A DNA stretch of 64,000 nt, from positions 68,735-132,734 of the forward strand of contig NW_013657619.1 of NCBI RefSeq assembly GCF_000142905.1, given 5' to 3'. Source of the DNA: Thecamonas trahens ATCC 50062 (Eukaryota > Protista > Apusomonadida). The number at the start of each line of letters is the position of its first letter. The stretch's first letter is position 1. Of the stretch, positions 15,584 to 33,976 are shown piece after piece. The notes below the pieces were generated by a model. The model worked only from the letters and a program-made list of their open reading frames with translations, ran no database searches and had not been told where the DNA came from. The translations under genes and the position numbers were made by a program.

Positions 15584-18310
15584 TCATTCATTCTTGGCGG
15601 CTGAGACACTGGTGGCAGCCGTCGTTGCCGCAGCAGCCTCCGAGGAGGAGGCGGCGGTGGACGAAGCCGCGGCGTCATCGGACGGGCCGTCGTCGGCGGA
15701 TTGCGGCTGGGTCGGGCCGGCCGAGTCGGCGGTTTCTGGGGCCGGTGCCGGGCCGGCGTCGCCGGTCGACTGGGAGAGCCAGGGGTGCTTGAGCATGTCT
15801 GCGGCCGAGGCGCGCGACTTGGGATCAAACTCGAGCATGGGCTGAAGGAAGAACGAGAGGGCGACGGCCTCCTTGAGCGGCCAGCCGTACTTTTCGCGGA
15901 GGACGGCGTGGATGCGCCACTCCCGCAGGTTGCGGATGTTGCGCAGCTCGCCGCGGCGGGTGAAAAAGTCCCGCGCATACTTGCCACGAGTAGCGACTGC
16001 GCGGGGCATGGGACCCAGTGTCTCAATCAGCCTCGCCAAGTGATCCTCGTCACGCGAGTAGTAGCCACCCGAGTGCGGGTTGAACAGAAAGTCGCCCGTG
16101 CAGAGCTCAAAAATCATGCAAGCCAGCGACCAGACATCCACCTTGGTCGAGTAGCCAGCGCCGAGGATGACCTCGGGTGCCCGGTACTGGCGCGTCTGGA
16201 TGTCGTCGGTAAAGTGCTTGTCGACCCAGCACGCGTTGCCGAGATCCGCAATCTTGACCTTGGTCGAGAGGTCGACCTTGACCTCCTTCCGTCGCTTCTT
16301 GGACGGCGACCGCGACTCGGATGCCGACGCACCCTCGGCCGCCGCGTCCTCGGACGCCCGCGTCGCCTCGGTTCCGCGCGTCGCACGCTCGCCGTCGCCG
16401 CCCTTGCCGTTGAGTGACGCATTCGACTTGTTCTTCTCTTTCTTGGCCTTGGACTGCTTGCGCCGCAGCTTGCGGTCGCGCCGCCGGCCGAACCCACGCA
16501 CGTGCGCCAGGTTTGGCGGCGTGGCCGCCATCTCCTGAAGCTCCTCCTCGGAAATCGTGAGCAGCACGTTCTCCGGCTTGAGGTCCGTGTGAATAATCCC
16601 GCACTCGTCGTGGAGAAAGGCAAGGCCCTCGAGGACCTGCTTGGCAATTCGCCGCACAATGTCCAGTGGGAGCCCATTGTAGTTGGACTGCTTGATGAGC
16701 CGGAGCAGGTTGCAGTGGAGGACCTCAAAGACCATGCACACGTGCTTGCCGTGCGGGCCGTAGTGCACAAAGTGGTCGATGAGGTGCACCACAGGCTGCT
16801 TGCCGCCCACATCGTGCTCAGACGCACGGGCAAGGAGCTTCACCTCATCCTCCGCTGCCTCCATGTAGTGCGGCGACGACTTGACAATCTTGAGCGCCAC
16901 ATACCGGCCCGAGTCCTCGTCCAGCGCCAGCCACACCGTCGAAAAGTGGCCCCATCCGAGCTTGCGCACAACCCGGAACCGCGAGTTGAACGTGTGTCCA
17001 ATGTCCACCGGGTGGTAGCCGCCTGTGGAAGAGGTGGGAGAGGGAGAGGGGAGGAGGGGGGGGGGGTGAGGCGGTGATATGCCAGAAAGCGGGAAAAGGC
17101 CGTGAAAGTGGCAGGAGGGGAAGGGGGGGGGGGGGGGGGAGGGAGGGGGGCGAGGTGGTGGCGAAGGCCGGAACCCGGGCGTAGGGGTAGTGGTCGAGGG
17201 TAGGGTGCGAGGAGGGACCCCGATCACGACGGACNNNNNNNNNNNNNNNNNNNNNNNNNNNNNNNNNNNNNNNNNNNNNNNNNNNNNNNNNNNNNNNNNN
17301 NNNNNNNNNNNNNNNNNNNNNNNNNNNNNNNNNNNNNNNNNNNNNNNNNNNNNNNNNNNNNNNNNNNNNNNNNNNNNNNNNNNNNNNNNNNNNNNNNNNN
17401 NNNNNNNNNNNNNNNNNNNNNNNNNNNNNNNNNNNNNNNNNNNNNNNNNNNNNNNNNNNNNNNNNNNNNNNNNNNNNNNNNNNNNNNNNNNNNNNNNNNN
17501 NNNNNNNNNNNNNNNNNNNNNNNNNNNNNNNNNNNNNNNNNNNNNNNNNNNNNNNNNNNNNNNNNNNNNNNNNNNNNNNNNNNNNNGGGGGGAGGGAGGG
17601 GGGGCGAGTGTGGCAAGCCGAACCCGGGCTGGGGTATGGTCAGGGTAGGGTGCAGAGGGAGGGAGGGAGGGAGGGAGGGAAGGAGGGGGAGAGGGAGGGA
17701 GGGAGGGAGGGAGGGGAGAGGGAGGGGGGAGGAGGGAGGTCATGATCGCGATCACGCTGACGATCATGCGGGAGGGGCGAAAGGGGGAGGAACAACGGGG
17801 GGTGCGGGTGGGGCAGGGCATGGGGAAAGGCAGGCAAAAAAAAAAGGAGGAGAGCAAGGCAAGATGGTACGTACCCTTCTTGTAGTCGGCCGAGCCCTCG
17901 TCCGACTCAGAGTCCTCTGAGAGTGGCTCGGTGGTGGAGAGCACGCCGCCCGGAATGGCGTCGAGCTCGAGGTCGGCGTCCATGGCCAGCAAGGCAGCAA
18001 CGGGTGCCGAGGGGCCTGTTTTTTTCTTGGACTTGTTTTTGGCCGCTCCGGCCGTCCCACCCGCCGCAGGAGCAGGAGCAGCACCGGCGGCAAAGCCATG
18101 GCCTCCGGCCTTGTGCCCGCTCGTGGTGGAACCGCCGTCGCCGCCTGCAGCAGCCGTGCCGCCTGCTGCGCTGCCGCTGCCTGCCCCCGCGCCGGAGCTG
18201 CCTCGATCGCCGCCCGCCCCGCTCTTCTTGGGTCGGAAAGGCGGAATGGCCTGGGTGGCGAACCGCGAGGCCTTGCTCTTCTTAGTCTTCTTCTTGCCCG
18301 TCCCAGACAT
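15584..18310 (-). CDS. SRPK: SR protein kinase (SRPK/Sky1/Dsk1 family); exons 18310-17875 and 17022-15584
   Basis: Splicing GTACGT (17874)...CAG (17023) restores the canonical DYKKGGYHPV. Also KLGWGHFSTVW, ALKIVKS, IIHTDLKPEN, a spacer insert, KIADLGNACW and DIQTRQYRAPEV. The intron contains an assembly gap. Confidence 0.95.
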   Translation of the reverse strand: MSGTGKKKTKKSKASRFATQAIPPFRPKKSGAGGDRGSSGAGAGSGSAAGGTAAAGGDGGSTTSGHKAGGHGFAAGAAPAPAAGGTAGAAKNKSKKKTGPSAPVAALLAMDADLELDAIPGGVLSTTEPLSEDSESDEGSADYKKGTYHLALLSSFFFCLPFPMPCPTRTPRCSSPFRPSRMIVSVIAIMTSLLPPPSPLPPSLPPSPPPSLPPSLPPSAPYPDHTPARVRLATLAPPPSPXXXXXXXXXXXXXXXXXXXXXXXXXXXXXXXXXXXXXXXXXXXXXXXXXXXXXXXXXXXXXXXXXXXXXXXXXXXXXXXXXXXXXXXXXXXXXXXXXXXXXXXXXXXXXXXXXXXXXXSVVIGVPPRTLPSTTTPTPGFRPSPPPRPPPSPPPPPFPSCHFHGLFPLSGISPPHPPPLLPSPSPTSSTGGYHPVDIGHTFNSRFRVVRKLGWGHFSTVWLALDEDSGRYVALKIVKSSPHYMEAAEDEVKLLARASEHDVGGKQPVVHLIDHFVHYGPHGKHVCMVFEVLHCNLLRLIKQSNYNGLPLDIVRRIAKQVLEGLAFLHDECGIIHTDLKPENVLLTISEEELQEMAATPPNLAHVRGFGRRRDRKLRRKQSKAKKEKNKSNASLNGKGGDGERATRGTEATRASEDAAAEGASASESRSPSKKRRKEVKVDLSTKVKIADLGNACWVDKHFTDDIQTRQYRAPEVILGAGYSTKVDVWSLACMIFELCTGDFLFNPHSGGYYSRDEDHLARLIETLGPMPRAVATRGKYARDFFTRRGELRNIRNLREWRIHAVLREKYGWPLKEAVALSFFLQPMLEFDPKSRASAADMLKHPWLSQSTGDAGPAPAPETADSAGPTQPQSADDGPSDDAAASSTAASSSEAAAATTAATSVSAAKNE

Positions 18311-22356: not shown

Positions 22357-23825
22357 NNNNNNNNNNNNNNNNNNNNNNNNNNNNNNNNNNNNNNNNNNNN
22401 NNNNNNNNNNNNNNNNNNNNNNNNNNNNNNNNNNNNNNNNNNNNNNNNNNNNNNNNNNNNNNNNNNNNNNNNNNNNNNNNNNNNNNNNNNNNNNNNNNNN
22501 NNNNNNNNNNNNNNNNNNNNNNNNNNNNNNNNNNNNNNNNNNNNNNNNNNNNNNNNNNNNNNNNNNNNNNNNNNNNNNNNNNNNNNNNNNNNNNNNNNNN
22601 NNNNNNNNNNNNNNNNNNNNNNNNNNNNNNNNNNNNNNNNNNNNNNNNNNNNNNNNNNNNNNNNNNNNNNNNNNNNNNNNNNNNNNNNNNNNNNNNNNNN
22701 NNNNNNNNNNNNNNNNNNNNNNNNNNNNNNNNNNNNNNNNNNNNNNNNNNNNNNNNNNNNNNNNNNNNNNNNNNNNNNNNNNNNNNNNNNNNNNNNNNNN
22801 NNNNNNNNNNNNNNNNNNNNNNNNNNNNNNNNNNNNNNNNNNNNNNNNNNNNNNNNNNNNNNNNNNNNNNNNNNNNNNNNNNNNNNNNNNNNNNNNNNNN
22901 NNNNNNNNNNNNNNNNNNNNNNNNNNNNNNNNNNNNNNNNNNNNNNNNNNNNNNNNNNNNNNNNNNNNNNNNNNNNNNNNNNNNNNNNNNNNNNNNNNNN
23001 NNNNNNNNNNNNNNNNNNNNNNNNNNNNNNNNNNNNNNNNNNNNNNNNNNNNNNNNNNNNNNNNNNNNNNNNNNNNNNNNNNNNNNNNNNNNNNNNNNNN
23101 NNNNNNNNNNNNNNNNNNNNNNNNNNNNNNNNNNNNNNNNNNNNNNNNNNNNNNNNNNNNNNNNNNNNNNNNNNNNNNNNNNNNNNNNNNNNNNNNNNNN
23201 NNNNNNNNNNNNNNNNNNNNNNNNNNNNNNGGAGGGCTGGCGTGGGGCTATCACCGGTTCATTTAATGGCATACTTAGGAGACGCAAAACGAAGTTGTGT
23301 CGAGAACGCATAGGGGAGAAGAGGGGGCAAGGCAGGTTGTACGTTCCTCGGGCCCATATGGGGAGTTGCCGAGGAGATAATGCTGGCTATGGCGCACGGA
23401 GGAACGCCATGACCGGTGTTGGTGCGGAGGGGGGGGAGGGGGGCTAGGGGGGGGATCGACGCATGTAAGGGGGTCGAGGAGGGAGAAAAATTCAAAGCGA
23501 TCACTGATCGTGATCTTCTCTGAGCGCCCTCCCAGCCTCAGCACGCTCCTCCTCGGATATAGCTATACGTTGAGGACTGTTGGATCGGACTGTATGCTCG
23601 CGAGCGATGACACCAACACAGAGACACAGACAAACAACAGTCTCGCCAGCGATCTCATCGATCCTCACGCCCCTCCGAGGAGTCCTCGCCATGGATCTCA
23701 TCACTTTCGTGGCTCTGTGTTGCCTGCCGCCACCGGTTTGATCCCTCCCTCCTCCCCCTCCCCCTCCCCCCTCCCCCTCCCCCTCCCCCTCCCCCCTCGC
23801 ACCCCACTCCCCCCGCTCCCACCCC

Positions 23826-24942: not shown

Positions 24943-26047
24943 TGCGCCCGCGACCGCGCCCGCGCCCGAATCCGAGTAGTCGGGTCCTCGCCGCGTCCCG
25001 GTTCTGCCGCAATCCGACCAGCTTCGGAGCGGTCGCGTGCGTGCTCTGCCGCTGCGCCTCGGGTTCGGACAGCTANNNNNNNNNNNNNNNNNNNNNNNNN
25101 NNNNNNNNNNNNNNNNNNNNNNNNNNNNNNNNNNNNNNNNNNNNNNNNNNNNNNNNNNNNNNNNNNNNNNNNNNNNNNNNNNNNNNNNNNNNNNTGAGCC
25201 CCTCCAGCCGCGACTTGAGCACGTTTTTGGACTCGCCCGAGACCAGCGCGCTCCGCTCGATGCTCGCCTCGGCTGCGCCGGACCCTGCCATCCGCAACAC
25301 CGGCTTGGGCTTTGCCCGCACCACGCCCATGCCACCCAGCCGCGCGCCGGACCCGGTCGCCTTACTCTGCTGCTGCAACGACTCGAGCCGCGCCGCCATC
25401 GCCGCCTTGCGCGCCGCCACCGCCGCCGGCTGCGGCTTGAGCGCTGGTGGCTTGCTCGCTGGTGGCTTGCTCGCCGCTACCGGTCTGCTACTTCCCGCCA
25501 CACTTGTAAATCGCGCCAGCGCCTCCGCCCACTCGTCCAGCACACTAGCCAGGCTGTGGCTCAGCGCGCACTTGACCCGTCCACCGGCTCTTATCTCTAG
25601 CACCCTCCTCGCCCCATCGGCAGCGCCCGGATCAAGCTCAAACCGCCCTCCACCGAGCTCGAGCGCAACCTGATCGCCAAGCCGCAGCACGCCGCTTCCG
25701 TCCAGACTCACCGCCCGCGACACCCATCCCGAGCTTGCGCCCCGGAACATCATCCTTCCAGCGCAGATCGATGCCGATCCTGAGCCCGACCCCAATTCTA
25801 GCGCCTTTCCTGTCCCAATTCCACCCCCTGCCGCCCGCCCGCCACTCCCAACCGCTCCGCCACGCCCTCCGGTCGGGCGGCCACTGGCCCGTCCTCCGCC
25901 CCGGCGACCGCCACTTCCGCCGGTCCCGCACTGACCAACCCCCGCACGACGACCACTTGGACCACCACCACTACCACCAGCTGCTTCCTCGTCGTGGATG
26001 TTATGCGCCCACCGGTCGAGAACCGACGGTCGTCCTCGGCGAGCCAT
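24797..26047 (-). CDS. PH-domain protein with an RG-repeat C-terminus; interrupted by an assembly gap
   Basis: ICAGRMMFRGASSGWVSRAVSLDGSGVLRL...LEIRAGGRVKCALS....LDEWAEALARF fits the PH pattern with its C-terminal helix Trp. The segment after the gap ends GRGRGR...SVLDRWKHNLA*. Confidence 0.6.
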
Positions 26048-26219: not shown

Positions 26220-29200
26220 CTACTGGCCATGGATCACCTGATCGCGGACGGCACGGAGCCGGGCCTCGAGCCGAGCCCGGACTACGGTGGCAGACGCGCC
26301 GAGGACGATTGGCATGCGGCAGCGGAGACCAAGGGTGTCAAACAGACCCAAGGTGACCACCTCGAGGCCGCGCTCACGGCGGAGGACCTCAACTCCGTCG
26401 AGTGCGGCGGTGATGCAGCCCTCCCACGCGGCTTCGGACCGGATCATGCTCACAACATGGGCAATCACCTGCGCGCAGCCCCGGACCGAGCCCGGCTCGA
26501 GCGAGATCAGGAACATCTCGCCGGTCTCGCCCTCCACCATAACCTCGCCTGCAAGCTCGAGCACGTGGCATGCCACCAGGTACGCCGCCGCCGACGAGGC
26601 AAACGCCTCCTCTGTCCCCGATCGCCGCGCGAGCCACTTGGCCAGCGCCTCAGCCTTGCCCGCCTTGGTCTCGTCCGCAATGTCGCCAAGCCCGGCCACC
26701 TCGCCCTTGGTTCGCAGCTCCACCAGCCCGGCTTGCGCCCCGGTCGCCAGCGTGGTGTAAGGGTCGAGCTTGAGATCAAGCCCGGCCTGCAGCCATACCC
26801 GGTCGATCATCGTGAGCACCGTCAGCACACCCTGCTCCGGACGCAGATCGCATCCTGTCTTGAACAGAAAGTAAAACGGCTCGCCCGCCGTGTCGTGGTT
26901 CGAATACGCCACCTTGAGCGTCACCCGCCCGGTTCCGGCCTCCACACGCATCACAGAGCACTCGTCCGCAAGTACCTTGCCCATAACCCACCGTGGATGG
27001 AGCGGGTGTGAGACGCCGCGGCTGCGGAGGAGCGGCGCAATGTCGCCAGCATCCTTGGCGCTGCCGGAGAGCAGCGCGTCCGCCGCAACCTGCAGCCGCT
27101 GCAGGAACCCGACCTGCGCAGAGAGCGCAGACACTAGCGTGCCCTTGGATCCGCCCTTGACGCGCAGCAGCGCCTCGGTCAGCACCCGCGCCCGCTCGCC
27201 GACCCACGGGCACGCCTGCGCCTCGGCACGCAGCGCCCAGAATAGCGCCATCGTCAGCCGCTGCGACGCCCGCGCGCGCGTAACTAGAAAGCCCGCAAGC
27301 GCAGACCCGTCGCGCTCCTCGTTCAGCACCGCGTACACCAGCGGAAGGACAAGCCGCTGCAGCAAGTGGTCGCCGAGCCCGCGGATATTGTCCACTGCAA
27401 ACGCCCGGATTCTCGCGTCCACAAACTCCGTGCCCAGAAGCTCAAGCGCTGCCAGCCACCCGATCGGCGACCACTGTCCGAGATACCCGTACGCCCGCCC
27501 CACAAACTCTGCATCCTGCCAGTTGATCCCGCGCCAGATCTTCGCCAGCGCGTCTGGCCGCGTCGTGAGAAACGGCATGTACTGCCACAACAGCGCAATA
27601 TCAACTCCCGACGCCCGCTTTGTCCGCGCAAGCACAGCCTCGATCTTCTTCCATGCAAGTTCAGACGGCGGCTTGAGATGCCCGCGCGTCTCAAACAGGA
27701 ACGCCTCTTGCACCCGTGGGTACCGCACCGCAACGCCGGTCGCAAGGCCTGGCTCCACCCCAACCTCCACTACCACCGGGAACCAGCGCGCGCTCCCATC
27801 CCGCGACGCCACATACACCGTGTGCCGGCCCAGCAGCAGCAGCCCATCTTCGTCAAACAGCGAGATCCGCGCGCTCCCCTCTCCCACAGCAACCTCCACA
27901 GCAGCTTCACGCGGAAGCTCGCTCACCGCAAGCGTAAACGTCCGCTCCACGCTGCCGAGAGGCGCAAGATGGTCGCTGCCGCGCACAAGCCACCCGGTCA
28001 CACTTGGCGACTCGGGATCGAGTGCAAGGAGCGTCAGCCCAAGCTTCGCCTCGCCAAGTTCCAGCGACGAGACGACCTCCGCCCCGCGGCCCACTTCGGC
28101 TCCGCCTTCTTCCGCCGGCGCCGCAAGCATTGGCTCCGCCAGCGCTCTTCGCCGCTCCGCACTGTGCGCCTGCGACACAGGCGCCAGCGCCTGCCTCTTA
28201 GCCTCGATCACAAGCTCCGGAAGCTTGCGCGACCGCAGGCACCGCTGCAGGTACAGCGAGCTGATGATTGGGCCCTCAATCGCAGACAAGTAGTCACACA
28301 GCCCGCGAACCTTGAGCGCAAACTCAGACGCGTCGCCGCCCTTCACCTTGTTCGACTCCAGGAACGTAGAGTGGCTCGCCCAAATCGCTGCAAGCACTTC
28401 CTCCGCCCCCAGATTCACGTTCACCCGCAGCGTCTTGGTCCGCTCGCCCGCGCCCGCGTACAGCCGCACAATTAGCCACTCGGGCTCCTTTGCCTCCAGC
28501 GACCGCGACTGTACCCGGCTCTGCCCGCCTCCCTCGCTCGTCTCCGACGACCGCGCCGCCTCGGTCTCGGCCTCGCCTCCGTCCGACATCCACCCACTGT
28601 CCGACATGTCAAACTCAGACTCAAACCCGTACAGCTGCCGTGCGTCCCACCCAGACATCACGCCCTCGGAGATTGCACCGTCGTCGCCCGATGACGACGA
28701 CGACGATGATGATGATGAAGACGACGTAAACGACGCGTGAGAGAGCTCACCCAGCCCGCCAGACGCCCCGCTCTTCGGCAGCACCTCACCTCTACTTGCT
28801 GCAGACTCACCTGTCGCCGCTAGGCTGGCAATGCTCTGCGAGGTCATACCCTCGCCGCGCCGGATGTGGTAGTCCACCGACGGGCCCGAGACTCCGCACG
28901 ACTTGTACCACGCTGCGATCTGGAGATGGATCGTCTTGCGGAACTTGTACAGCATCAGCTCGTATGCGACCTCTTGCGCAATCGCCTGGTTAAAGCCAAA
29001 CATAATCGGCGGGGGCCGAGCGCAGAGCCGACAGCCACAGTGTCGCCGCTCTTCAGCGTCTCCACAAACGACGACGCATCGTACTCGGGCGACGGTCGGA
29101 GCGAGATAAACTCCAGCCGCATGAGCGCCACAAGATCGTCTGCAAGCGTCTCGCGGACCTTGGCCTCCTCGTCCGCCGACGACTCGACCTCGCCCGCCGC

Positions 29201-32200
29201 TCCCATGATGAACGACGCTGCTCGCGAGACTCGCGCAGACCGCACCGCCGCCGCAGCTTCGCCGCGCTTTCGCCGCCCGGTCCGCGGCAGGACCGCAAGC
29301 AGGCCAAAGGCGTCAAACTCTTTGCCAAACACAGCCGCAACCTTGAGCGTCAGTGCCTGAGACGGAGCAAGCCGGTCGATCCGCGCCGTGATGATCCCCG
29401 CCAGCGAGAGCGGAACATCTACCTCGTTCAGCGCCCGCGTCGCAACTACCGACGACGCGCCCATGTCCACACGCACCGCATCCGACTCGGCGAGCGCCGT
29501 CGCAACCTCCTGCGCAAAGAACGGGTTTCCGCCAGACTTCTCCGCCACAAACTCGGCCACTGCCTCGTCCACCTGCCGCACGTTGAGCCGCAGGCCAACA
29601 AGTTGCCGAACATGCTCCTTCTCAAGCGGCGGGAGAACCAGGTGGTACCCAGGTGCTGTGTGGCCCACCAGTGTCTGATAGAAGCTCGGCACATGCGCAG
29701 TGTACGGTCGCGACGAGATCATAAACACCACCCTGGCTGAGCTCCCTTTTTGCCCGTACGCCTCCACCATCGCCAGGAGCAGCGACCGCGAGCCGGCGTC
29801 AAACAAGTGCACATCGTCCACCGCAATGAGGCTCTTGCGCTCGTCAAACTGCGCCAGCGTTGCCACAACCTTGCATATGTACGCGTTAAGGTCCGCAGAC
29901 GACGGCCGCGATATCTTGCCCTTGGCTGCACACTCCCGCTGCTTCATCGCCGCCTTGCTTCGCGCCTTGGGCACCGAGAGCGACGTCGTTCGGCTCCGAT
30001 CCTTGGCCTTGGCCTTGGCTTTGGCCCTAGCCTTGCCGACCTTCCGCCGCTTGCCGCCGCCACTCTTGCGGACTCGCTTGCGAATCCGCTTGCGGACCCG
30101 CTTGCGAATATGCTTGCTCCCGCCTTCGCCCACTCCATCGGCCTTCTCCTTGCCCTTTCCCTTTCCCTTTCCCTTGCCCTTCCGCCTCACCTTGGACCGC
30201 AACGAGGTCAGCAGCGACCGCCGTTTCTTGATCGAGCGGGGCTGCGCTGAGCTGCTCGACGACGCCGCCGAGCTGCTAGCCGAACCAGCTCCCGAGCATG
30301 CGCCTCCGCCGGAGCAGCTGCTGGCCGACGAGCCTCCGTTACAGCATCTGGCCGTGACCTCGTCGGTGTAGGTGTAGGTGTAATCGTACTCGTACTCGCA
30401 CGAGTCCGACTCGTCACCGACCGAGACCAGCCGCTTGCGGGCAAGGTCAAGGCCGAGCACAGGATTGAGCAACCAGAGCGAGTCAATCATGGATGTGTCC
30501 GACGTTGCTCGTGCCAGCGCCGCCCGCGCCGCGTCCTCGCGTGCGTACTCGACGTCCGCAATGCCCAACAGTCGCTCGAGCATGGCGATCCACGGAAAGA
30601 ACGGAACCTTCCGCTTGTGCGGATCGCCGCAGACATCAAAGACCTGCAGCTTGTTCTTGGCGCCGTTGGCCACAGCTTCTTCCAGCAGCCGTGACTTCCC
30701 GATCCCGGCCCCTCCCTCTAGCATGAGCAGCGCCGCCGCCGTCGACGCCCCGCCGTCGCCAGCCGTCATGCGCATCATCCGTTGCAGCACCCGCTGCCGG
30801 CCCACAACCTCGACGTTGAGCTCGAGCATTGACTCGCCACGCTTCAGTGCTCGTCCCGTGTGCTCTGCATCCGACGAGAGCATCGGTGCAAAGGCGGCGA
30901 CAGGCAGTGCCTTGCCCTTCATCATCTTCTCGCCGAGTGAGGTGAACTGCAGCGAGTGGTCGAGGAGCGATGCTGCCCGGACCGTCGCCTGGTCGCACAC
31001 CACCGGTGAGCCCGGGAAGGCCTTCATCAGCCGCGCAGCTGTGTTCACCATGTCGCCCATCATGGTGTACTCACGCCGGAGCTCGCCGCCCACCACCCCG
31101 CAGAACGCCACTCCGGTCGTGATGCCGATCGACGGTGCGAGCCCGAGCTGCGATAGCGAGTCCTGCGCCATAGCCCCAGCCAGAATCCCGCGCAGCGCGT
31201 CGTCCTCGTGCGACATTGGCGGGAGGCCAAAGCCGGCGAGACAGACAAACCCCTTGTCATCAACCAGAAACTTGTTGACAATACCACCGTACTTGAAGAC
31301 TGCAGCCTGGATGGCAAGCACCACTGCGTCCATGGTTGGAATAAGCGCCTCGGGTGGCGCATCAAGATCCAGGCCGCCCACAGAGACAAACAGAACCGTG
31401 GCCTTGCGGAGCTCCGCAACCCATTTGCCCTGCCGGTCAAACACGTCGCGCCCAGTGTTTCGCTGGATGACTCGCGGAATGAACATCCGCAGCGCCATGT
31501 CCACCCCCGACGCTCCCACAAGGTCTGGGTCCTCCAGCGGCGCCGAGTCGATCGGCCGCACAATGCCACGCAACTCCACACCTTCGCTCAGCGGCACGCC
31601 CTCGACCCGCGACCGCACAAGCTCCCACGTGGCGTGGGTGAGAACAGCCTTGTCTGGCGACGCCGCCGTCAGCGCCTCCTCCAGCAGGCCGAGCGACGAG
31701 CCAACAAGCACAAACTCCCACTTGTTCCCGCGCCCGCCAAGCTGTAGCATCGTCAACTGCGAGTCCGACGCCAGCGCAATGTGCAGCCGCGGCCGGGTCG
31801 GGTCGTCGTTCGAGTTCATCCGCGTCAGAATCTCCAGCGCGCACTGGGCTGCCCGCAGTGCACACGTAGCCGCGCCGTCGGCGCCACTGGGGGATGCCCA
31901 AACCGCAAGCAGCGCGTCGCCCGCAAACTTGACTACGTCGCCGCCGTGGTTGCGCACAAGCGAGATGAGCCCACCAAAGTAGTTGTTGAGCAGCGCCACA
32001 AGCTGCTCCGCTCCGTCGCGGCACGATGCCAGCTGCTCGGTGAGCGCGGTAAAACCCGAGATGTCGCACATGACCACCGTACCGTAGAACGGCGGATGCA
32101 TGGCCTCAGCATGCCACTTTGAGCCCACTTGCTGGGCGCACCGTTCCACCACCATCAGCGGCAGGTATGACGACAGTGTCCGCGCAATGACCGCAGAGCC

Positions 32201-33673
32201 GAGCTTGTGGCCCGCGCCCGATGAGTTGAGCCTGGACCCACTGCTCGCGCCGAGTGTCTTGGTCGATGACGCGCGCTGCAGCTTGTGCAGAACCTTGATC
32301 TCGGACGGGAGCTTCGGCACCTTGACAACCCGCGGCGAGAGCGGGAGCGGCGGCGCCACCACGTCGCGCACGTCCTCGTGGAACCGCAGCCGCTGCAGCA
32401 CCGTCCGCCCGCGGTTTACGCGAGCCGCCTCGTAGTCGGACAGATGCGGCCGCGCAGGCATGGTCAGCAGCGAATCAATCGCAGTGTCGAGCGCTGTGTG
32501 TGCCTCGAGCGCTTCGGTCGAGAGTACCGTGAGGACCTCAACGTTGGGTGGGAGTTCACCCAGTGCCACGTCGTCGTCATAGACAACGCCAAACGCCGAG
32601 ACAAAATGGTGACTCTTCTCAGTCGAGTACGGCGCAAACTTGGCCCGCAACGCCGCGATCCGCGTCGTGCTATCGTAGTACTGCGTCGTCCACGAGTTGG
32701 ACGCGTACACCGCCATCCGCACGTCCAGGCCGGTATCCGAGTCTGACGCGAGCTCGTCGAGCTTGGGGCCGCCGTCGCTCCTGCTCTCGACCCCGCCTCT
32801 TTCAAGAAGCTCGTCGTCAACGTCCGAGTCGAGCTCGAGGTCGGAGCACTCGTCAAAGAACGAGTCCGAAAACGTGATGATCATGTCCTCGTCCTCGCTC
32901 CCACCCTCAAACACGCCTGGATACGCTGTCGCCTCCGTTGGCTGCGGAGAGATGGTGTGGGCTGTAGCATAGCCGGACTCGCTCGACGTCGACGCCATCT
33001 CGCTGCACCCTGGAGCGTAGCCGGCGACCTGCCCGCGAGTATCATCAGCATCTTCGCCACACACGCCTTCCGAGCCTCCTCCACTCCTACTCGCTGCACC
33101 AGGTAAGCCCAAAACAGGCAATGCTTGGGCAACAGGCGGCGGCAGATCGGTAACCGTGGCGTCGATGACCGCGACGGTGGGCCTCAGCGGCCACACACGA
33201 TCAAACTCGGCCTCGAGATGACGATCGAGCACCACCCGCAGCATGTCCATAGCTGCTGGAAGAGCACTCTCCACTACGCCTCGCAGCTCGCCCTCGCTGC
33301 GGCGACGAGAGTGATCAGAGCGCAACGAGGGTGGTGATGACGACGATGATGGCGATGATGGTCGGCGCCGAGCCACAGCAAGGACCCAGGAGCAGCGGAC
33401 AAAGACGACACAACCAGGCGAAGCAGCGAAAAGAACATGGCCCGCCACCGAGCCCTGGCAGCCACCGGGGACTGGGGTCGGGTAAACGACGCCCAGCCAG
33501 CCTGGATCGGGAGCAGGATGGGTGGGCAGGCGGCCGGCAAAGGCGACATGGCCCCACAGGCCACGAGCGGCACGGGTGTGGACGGCAAGGCCAACCCAGC
33601 TGGAGTCAGGCACAGCGGCAGGTACTGTCACTTGGCCTGCGCCAACGACCTCTCCCGCCTGCCCTTTGCCCAT
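26220..33673 (-). CDS. Chimeric CAP-Gly / class I PI3K-like / soluble adenylyl cyclase-STAND NTPase protein (~2,480 aa); one frameshift at 29011-29015
   Basis: Order from N to C: CAP-Gly-like (~33600-33370); PI3K ABD/linker-like (~32730-32290); cyclase C1 CDISGFT...KFAGDA; cyclase C2 NKFLVDDKG...REYTMMGDMVNTAARLM; Walker A GGAGIGKS; Walker B IAVDD; GGNPFFAQE and ARIDRL; QEVAYELM...HLQIA; PI3K RBD FALKVRGLCDYL; C2 LPREA..SLFDEDG; helical LELL..EFVD.RIRAFAV..LFWALRAE; kinase FKTGCDLR. Adding one C to the C5 run fuses ORFs 28955-33949 and 26220-29003. Confidence 0.9.
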
Positions 33674-33772
33674 GCTGCCGTAAGTGCCTGTAGCCGCGTG
33701 TGCCCCCCCCCCCCCCCTCCCCTGCCTGTCCCCCCTTCCGTGACCGGGCGCTGGCCTGGCGGGGCTTTGGGC

Positions 33773-33839
33773 GGTCGGTCGGTCGGTCGGTCGGTCGGTC
33801 AGTCGGTCGGTTGGTCGGTCGGTCGGTCGGTCGGTCGGT
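33773..33839 (+). repeat. (GGTC)n tetranucleotide microsatellite
   Basis: Directly visible, upstream of the chimera's probable ATG. It explains the PTDR repeats at the start of the 1664-aa ORF. Confidence 0.9.
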
Positions 33840-33976
33840 GGGTCGTTTGGTGGGCTATGGCTTGCGGCCTGCAGGGTGCGGGCTGTGGGCAAGCTGTGCG
33901 GATGATAGGGCGATCTGCCAGGGGGATGGGATGGGGGGTTTATACACATGGTATCGCGTTAGTTTTGGGTAGGATA

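Follow-up and report, generated by a model that had tools for sequence, protein, structure and literature searches.

We analysed a 64,000-nucleotide stretch of the Thecamonas trahens ATCC 50062 genome (contig NW_013657619.1, positions 68,735–132,734; hereafter the window, with positions counted from its first letter), which carries on its minus strand what is most likely one gene of about 2,480 codons (26220–33673), here called the fused gene. An intact-looking pair of soluble adenylyl cyclase (sAC) catalytic domains, an intact P-loop and a folded, conserved, catalytically dead phosphoinositide 3-kinase (PI3K) body with a Ras-binding domain (RBD) lie in one frame. The explanation that we favour, at somewhat better than even chances, is that a single gene encodes an sAC-type cyclase-STAND module in which a dead class I-type PI3K body replaces the TPR sensor and relays Ras and membrane input to the cyclase.

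Two long open reading frames (ORFs) cover this region on the minus strand, one of 1,664 codons (28955–33949) and one of 927 codons (26220–29003). The sole break in frame is a run of five Gs (G5) at 29011–29015 on the plus strand, and a sixth G there (G6) gives one continuous frame. The two frames overlap by about 100 codons; the first ends in out-of-frame-looking residues after ...GSALGP, and the second continues the winged-helix motif of the STAND module (MFGFNQAIAQEVAYELM...), with the stretch F-x-F-x-x-A-I-A-Q-E-V-A-Y running on in it and no Met preceding the motif. Contigs of four public sequencing runs (an estuary metagenome, a marine metagenome and two data sets of the organism) were placed on 27201–33200. 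The contig of run X2, a marine metagenome from 2016, has one extra G behind 29010 (depth 4.09 of 4.09), and it represents an independent sample, since it differs from the window at a handful of single-nucleotide polymorphisms. Contigs of the other runs tile both junctions (27592–28534, 28367–28660, 28654–28875, 29112–29540 and 29183–29807), and the coding signature in G+C content at third codon positions (GC3, 0.7–0.9) is uninterrupted from about 32960 to 26220, switching frame at the break. Because of the G6 contig, the contigs tiled over the junctions and the continuous GC3 signature, 26220–33673 is most likely one gene, the frame break (G5 versus G6) probably being an assembly error. The organism's own public runs are small and date from 2010, which fits 454-era data prone to homopolymer errors.

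The two ORFs were searched as separate pieces, each on its own side of the frame break. In the first, Pfam reports Guanylate_cyc in two stretches (E-value 2e-13), AAA_16 (37.3 bits against a cut-off of 32.6, E-value 5e-9) and a weak CAP_GLY match. The second contains PI3K_rbd (30.4 bits against a cut-off of 22, E-value 5e-7), PI3Ka (85.1 bits, E-value 5e-24) and PI3_PI4_kinase, the last at 23.9 bits, below its cut-off of 27.1, and over the first 55 of 241 positions (profile 4–58). No TPR family was found by Pfam in either ORF. A preliminary description, made from the sequence, had proposed an sAC-type module and a class I-type PI3K body in a single reading frame, with a frame change at 29011–29015 and the TPR sensor swapped for the PI3K body. 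The domain order that it gave is real (Guanylate_cyc twice, AAA_16, PI3K_rbd, PI3Ka and a partial PI3_PI4_kinase by Pfam), and its PI3K-type C2 domain, for which there is no Pfam match, was recovered by hhalign collinearity and a confident structural model. The frame change could be located exactly, at the G5 run; GC3 and the G6 contig support the single frame, and the swap is supported as well.

From the N to the C terminus, the gene encodes a degenerate CAP-Gly domain, a disordered acidic region, a possible ubiquitin-like segment, the two cyclase homology domains (C1 and C2), the STAND NTPase, a winged helix, an acidic linker and an RBD-C2-helical-kinase body. The features are as follows:

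33671–33673, minus strand: probable start codon, Met93 of the long ORF (start uncertain; the ORF upstream of Met93 reads as a TDRP microsatellite)
33389–33565, minus strand: degenerate CAP-Gly domain (Pfam CAP_GLY; GKNDG motif not retained)
32290–32730, minus strand: possible ubiquitin-like segment and two predicted helices (strong coding signature, GC3 0.7–0.9)
31568–32089, minus strand: cyclase homology domain C1 (phmmer to ADCY10 structures 4OYA/4CLF, domain 1, 62.7 bits; Pfam Guanylate_cyc)
30908–31495, minus strand: cyclase homology domain C2 (phmmer to ADCY10, domain 2, 80.1 bits)
30500–30808, minus strand: STAND/AAA_16 P-loop with Walker A GGAGIGKS (Pfam AAA_16; motif read from the translation)
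29930–30457, minus strand: low-complexity, acidic-then-polybasic insert within the NTPase (read from the translation)
28899–29929, minus strand: Walker B (IAVDDVH), helical arm and winged-helix end of the STAND module (spans the frame break)
29011–29015, no strand assigned: G5 homopolymer (C5 on the coding strand), site of the frame change (G6 in a metagenome contig)
28485–28898, minus strand: Ser-rich acidic linker with conserved Trp-acidic motifs at 28581–28670 (shared with the orthologue on metagenome contig L013)
28206–28502, minus strand: PI3K Ras-binding domain (Pfam PI3K_rbd; model residues 12–108, pLDDT ~90)
27753–28046, minus strand: PI3K-type C2 beta-sandwich, shortened (hhalign collinearity with class I C2; eight model strands, residues 156–253)
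27153–27611, minus strand: PI3K helical (PIK) domain (Pfam PI3Ka, 85.1 bits)
26223–26987, minus strand: PI3K kinase fold without catalytic motifs, a pseudokinase (hhalign and model; stop codon at 26220–26222)

Residues 600–1040 match the structures of human ADCY10 (4OYA/4CLF) over both C1 and C2 (phmmer, E-value 3.1e-41). In sAC enzymes, a pair of Asp residues in C1 binds metal, a Lys and a Thr in C2 bind substrate, and an Asn and an Arg in C2 act on the transition state. According to the ADCY10 alignment, the fused protein keeps both metal-binding Asp residues in C1 and, in C2, all four active-site residues (Lys, Thr, Asn and Arg), each identical to its sAC counterpart; these residues lie in the stretches DISGFT, FAGDAL, VNKF, EYTMMG and VNTAARLM. 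Judged by these residues, the cyclase looks active and directed to ATP. At the bicarbonate site, the Lys equivalent to sAC K95 is kept (VKFAGD). The NTPase that follows has intact Walker A (GGAGIGKS) and Walker B (IAVDDVH) motifs, with the acidic-then-polybasic insert of about 175 residues between them. The best full-length relatives of this half are cyclase-AAA_16(-TPR) proteins of 1,300–1,400 residues (35–40% identity), mostly bacterial, plus T. trahens paralogues; a PI3K domain is present in none of the 120 listed matches to the cyclase-STAND ORF. The genome (28.7 Mb in 131 pieces, 65% G+C) has at least 50 cyclase-domain matches, a repertoire large for a small heterotroph. Its sAC-STAND genes are the fused gene (contig C61) and three paralogues (C39, C3 and C49), none of which adjoins a PI3K match. 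A protein that public databases list under T. trahens ATCC 50062 maps to contig C39 with 100% identity along its length, in agreement with the stated source of the genome. A bacterial contig in ENA (L014, 5428–18441) has several adjacent cyclase-AAA_16 and AAA_16-only genes beside wax-ester synthase genes; this locus is unrelated to the fused gene.

Aligned together with its orthologue against 30 class I PI3Ks, the PI3K body gave an hhalign probability of 100 (E-value 4.6e-57), with residues 174–892 of the second ORF collinear with class I PI3Ks from the RBD to the C-lobe of the kinase. An AlphaFold2 (AF2) model built on a 48-sequence alignment (pLDDT 84, pTM 0.86) shows the RBD, an eight-stranded C2, the helical domain and a two-lobed kinase fold, and the closest solved structures found by Foldseek are p110δ and p110α (E-value ~1e-31, TM score 0.73–0.77). 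In the hhalign alignment, a stretch with four residues fewer stands in the place of the catalytic loop GDRHNDN (DRHxxN); DFG has become SLE, the activation loop is missing and the phosphate-binding loop is altered, with the Lys of the FK-x-G-D-D-L-R motif still present. On these motif losses, the kinase is predicted to be catalytically dead, and therefore any link to phosphoinositides would be only through binding or scaffolding. The same genome encodes two class I-like PI3Ks, a FYVE-ankyrin PI3K, Vps34 and PI4KIIIα, whose kinase domains score well above the cut-off (139–227 bits). The nearest paralogue of the fused PI3K body in the genome by BLAST is the class I-like PI3K c10 (171 bits). Parts for such a fusion were thus at hand in the genome, which has three paralogues of the sAC-STAND type and, among class I-like PI3Ks, two active ones.

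A search of 1.84 billion representative proteins returned one close relative of the PI3K body, P0121 (E-value 5e-208; the next match is at 5e-42), encoded on a 3,650-base ENA metagenome contig (L013). It is 49–52% identical to the PI3K body and shares the dead catalytic loop, with SFT in place of DFG. An identity of about 50% without any stop, together with the shared motif losses, argues for a long-lived, conserved protein that is probably non-catalytic. Two Trp-acidic motifs (SGWDAR..LY and SDSGW.SD) are common to both orthologues (28581–28670 here and 120–230 on L013) within a linker otherwise made of low-complexity Ser/Asp sequence, and may be a short linear binding motif. The frame of P0121 is open to the 5' end of its contig, with no Met ahead of the RBD, and these features argue for P0121 being the C-terminal part of something longer in its organism. 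The gene downstream on L013 is unrelated to the gene downstream of the fused gene. Alignments of the PI3K body against JGI metagenome contigs found no relative. A word-indexed search with residues 380–1000 gave cyclase matches only, covering about 65% of the query; the few of these without a Pfam domain are other eukaryotic sAC-like fragments, whose match is confined to the cyclase core. The search with the STAND arm gave one weak bacterial match, on an actinobacterial-looking contig.

Under the favoured explanation, the cyclase would make cyclic AMP (cAMP), and the dead PI3K body would serve as its sensor or localiser in place of the TPR sensor. The RBD, being p110-like, would bind a Ras-family GTPase, the surfaces of the C2 and pseudokinase domains may contact membranes or, possibly, PI3K adaptors, and the STAND NTPase would couple this input to cyclase activity. 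A microtubule-related location is hinted at, as speculation, by the CAP-Gly-like domain together with the conserved Trp-acidic motifs. A more ambitious statement, which we consider rather unlikely, is that a class I-type PI3K was turned into a non-catalytic sensor, placing the cyclase under the direct control of a Ras-family GTPase and perhaps of an adaptor or G-beta-gamma; in its strongest form, it would include a relic adaptor-binding domain (ABD) and linker, with the cyclase thereby nested in the PI3K.

Several observations weigh against the single fused gene with a relaying PI3K body. At the bicarbonate site, the equivalent of sAC Arg176 aligns to Glu (DDVRLA versus GLLEEA), so bicarbonate activation is not to be assumed. 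In a maximum-likelihood tree, the fused body and its orthologue form a clade with 100% support; this clade sits on a stem of 6.45 changes per site in a polytomy that leaves its placement unresolved, and class membership by descent is thus not established. The upstream part of the orthologue was not found in the JGI metagenome, word-indexed or STAND-arm searches. Among the four runs, the base at the frame break is covered by a single contig, that of X2, at a depth of about 4, and none of the listed public runs is recorded as RNA. Finally, the reference strain itself may carry the frameshift.

We then weighed three other explanations. In the first, a class I PI3K with ABD and linker received an sAC-STAND gene ahead of its RBD, and residues 407–554 are the relic, which may still pack on the kinase. 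The preliminary description had proposed such an insertion on the basis of three strings (ALDTAIDSLLTMP, ARVNRGRTVLQRL and SPRVVKVPKLPSEI), which are indeed present at 32290–32730, and of their likeness to the p110 ABD-RBD linker, which proved no better than chance in Pfam, BLASTP, hhalign and hidden Markov model (HMM) tests. Pfam gave nothing for 32290–32730 at E-values up to 10, and the segment has no paralogue in the genome. Its BLASTP comparison with c10 gave an E-value of 0.17 (single comparison) and hhalign against the class I N-terminal alignment a probability of 0.25%; although non-significant, both best alignments fall on the c10 linker just before the RBD, which speaks for a relic, as does the predicted secondary structure of a beta hairpin, a helix and two long helices. 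The ubiquitin-like stretch of the preliminary description has weak language-model feature matches (scores of 0.76–0.83) that stay below the 0.9 lead level; they also speak for a relic. An AF2 single-sequence model of the segment has a pLDDT of 38, too low for the model to be of use.

Three HMMs, built on the class I N-terminus, the linker and the linker motif (I-x-x-L-I-G ... E-x-x-x-F-R), reported nothing at 32290–32730, where the I-x-x-L-I-G and F-R positions are not kept, and random six-frame ORFs of the window score better. In leave-one-out runs, the motif HMM recovered five of 12 left-out genuine class I linkers at E-values below 0.01, yet it found no domain in the cyclase ORF, a negative of some weight but not much. 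Little can be read into the Pfam ABD negative, since that model fails equally on the genuine class I-like PI3Ks of this genome. In other protist PI3Ks, the place of the ABD is taken by unrelated N-terminal modules, so a plain N-terminal fusion onto an ABD-less body is the ordinary pattern. The best reading of these comparisons is that the N-terminal extension is probably unrelated to the PI3K ABD and linker, and we consider a relic decidedly improbable. As the ABD/linker match failed, insertion of the cyclase between ABD/linker and RBD is not supported, and by the criterion given in the preliminary description what remains is a simple fusion that has the PI3K body at its C terminus.

In the second explanation, the gene is broken or decaying: the frameshift is real in the strain, a cyclase-STAND protein of 1,570–1,660 residues is made, and the PI3K part is untranslated or a separately expressed remnant. 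The G5 in the reference assembly agrees with this, as do the lost kinase motifs, the very long branch and the fact that neither ORF (searched in three forms) has an exact match in the public protein collection. However, in the second frame the first Met comes only within the winged-helix motif, itself split by the break, and an independent population sample (X2) has the frame intact. Downstream of the break, about 930 codons without a stop keep a GC3 of 0.7–0.9 and encode a confident fold, and the identity of about 50% to an orthologue that lost the same motifs is a sign of purifying selection acting on a non-catalytic protein. We therefore hold a broken gene to be very improbable.

The third explanation, a scaffolding error that joined two unrelated genes, has next to no chance: the assembly is old and scaffolded, with N gaps nearby, and all run contigs break at a repeat at 30001–30038, but 26220–33949 contains no N, contigs of the four runs tile 27201–33200 (including 28367–28875 and 29112–29807), and the STAND motif itself carries on across the break. 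The scaffolding of the assembly follows from runs of N in the window at 17235–17586, 22357–23230 and 25076–25194, which account for its apparent low-GC patches; the last of these gaps is inside the neighbouring downstream gene.

The repeat at 30001–30038 is of the GCCTTGGCC type and encodes a Lys-Ala/Lys-Gly tract. Depth there is 5 to 20 times higher, and contigs of each of the four public runs end or branch at it; tracts of this kind must occur widely in this genome and in organisms that live alongside. A 341-base skip in run X7 (30038–30380) was considered as an intron and rejected: its ends read AC..GT on both strands, it is anchored on one side by only 25 letters, and it lies within the low-complexity repeat. 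Near-identical DNA of the gene is present in estuary and marine metagenomes (runs X1, X2 and X10). X2 (145 million letters) contains 63% of the sampled words, at about 4x depth, so the organism or a very close strain is a large part of that sample.

The 5' end of the fused gene is less secure than the rest. From 33949 to about 32960 the usual GC3 coding signature is seen in no reading frame, and the first 90 codons of the long ORF include a TDRP repeat (a microsatellite at about 33770–33838) of non-coding appearance. Met93 (33673) is a reasonable start codon, though not a secure one, because CAP_GLY passes its cut-off in the N-terminal piece scanned from Met93 (27.6 bits against 26.5, E-value 2.7e-6; the score over the full ORF is 24.4 bits). 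The gene could in truth begin, or have its first exon, anywhere from 33673 to about 32960.

Full-text literature searches turned up no publication that connects a cyclase-PI3K protein to Thecamonas or apusomonads and none on a cyclase joined to a PI3K pseudokinase, in line with the preliminary description, which knew of no described protein with this architecture; a 2015 PI3K phylogeny that includes T. trahens makes no mention of the fused protein. The sAC-STAND cyclases themselves are known, and what is new is the C-terminal module on one of them. sAC-type cyclases with a STAND NTPase are widespread, and what their C-terminal regions sense is largely unknown. The partners of a PI3K body are well understood: the RBD binds Ras, the C2 and kinase surfaces meet membranes, and the C2-helical region takes adaptors. 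A set of domains with known partners in the sensor position would give an sAC-like enzyme a concrete, testable input. Retention of a lipid PI3K as a pseudoenzyme would be unusual as well, and here the body is about 50% identical in two organisms that share its motif losses. If the direct Ras control of the more ambitious statement holds, the fused protein would be a single-polypeptide Ras-to-cAMP switch in the lineage that is sister to animals and fungi, having converged on the arrangement of fungal Cyr1. Ras would then have been wired to cAMP a second time, independently, in the neighbours of the opisthokonts. Should the body serve scaffolding or localisation alone, what is left is a lineage-specific domain shuffle.

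Among known systems, ADCY10 and the bacterial and protist cyclase-AAA_16-TPR proteins share with the fused protein the tandem C1-C2, the sAC active-site residues and a P-loop STAND-type NTPase behind them. The fused protein differs in having a PI3K body instead of TPR repeats and Glu at the position of the bicarbonate-binding Arg; its N terminus is extended by a long region that includes a CAP-Gly-like domain, and its NTPase is interrupted by a large charged insert. With class I PI3Ks (p110α, p110δ and p110γ) it has in common the order and fold of RBD, C2, helical and kinase domains, and it ends soon after the kinase fold, without the PX or second C2 of class II; unlike them, it has its DRHxxN loop deleted, its DFG and activation loop lost and its P-loop altered, and no ABD was detected in tests of limited power. 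Multidomain protist PI3Ks likewise place an unrelated signalling module ahead of an RBD/C2-helical-kinase body where the ABD would be: three public, uncharacterised long PI3Ks (P0181, P0209 and P0222) have CH-RhoGEF, RCC1-RhoGEF and WD40-C1-FH3-ELMO modules before an active PI3K body. The kinase domains of such proteins, including the FYVE-Ank-PI3K of this genome, score in full (180–205 bits versus 23.9 here), and none comes with a cyclase.

A PI3K-superfamily kinase fold is used as a non-catalytic scaffold in TRRAP/Tra1, which in contrast to the fused protein belongs to the PIKK branch rather than to the lipid PI3Ks and is without an RBD, a C2 or a fused enzyme. In fungal Cyr1/Cdc35, one polypeptide carries a ubiquitin-fold domain that binds Ras together with a class III cyclase. 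Cyr1/Cdc35 is built differently, from unrelated parts in another order, as RA-LRR-PP2C with a single dimerising catalytic domain and without a STAND or PI3K fold, and RA, LRR and PP2C families are absent from the Pfam scans of both ORFs, so the fused protein is not a member of the Cyr1 type. The likeness would be one of function: Cyr1/Cdc35 is a possible analogue of the fused protein, which would act like it without shared parts.

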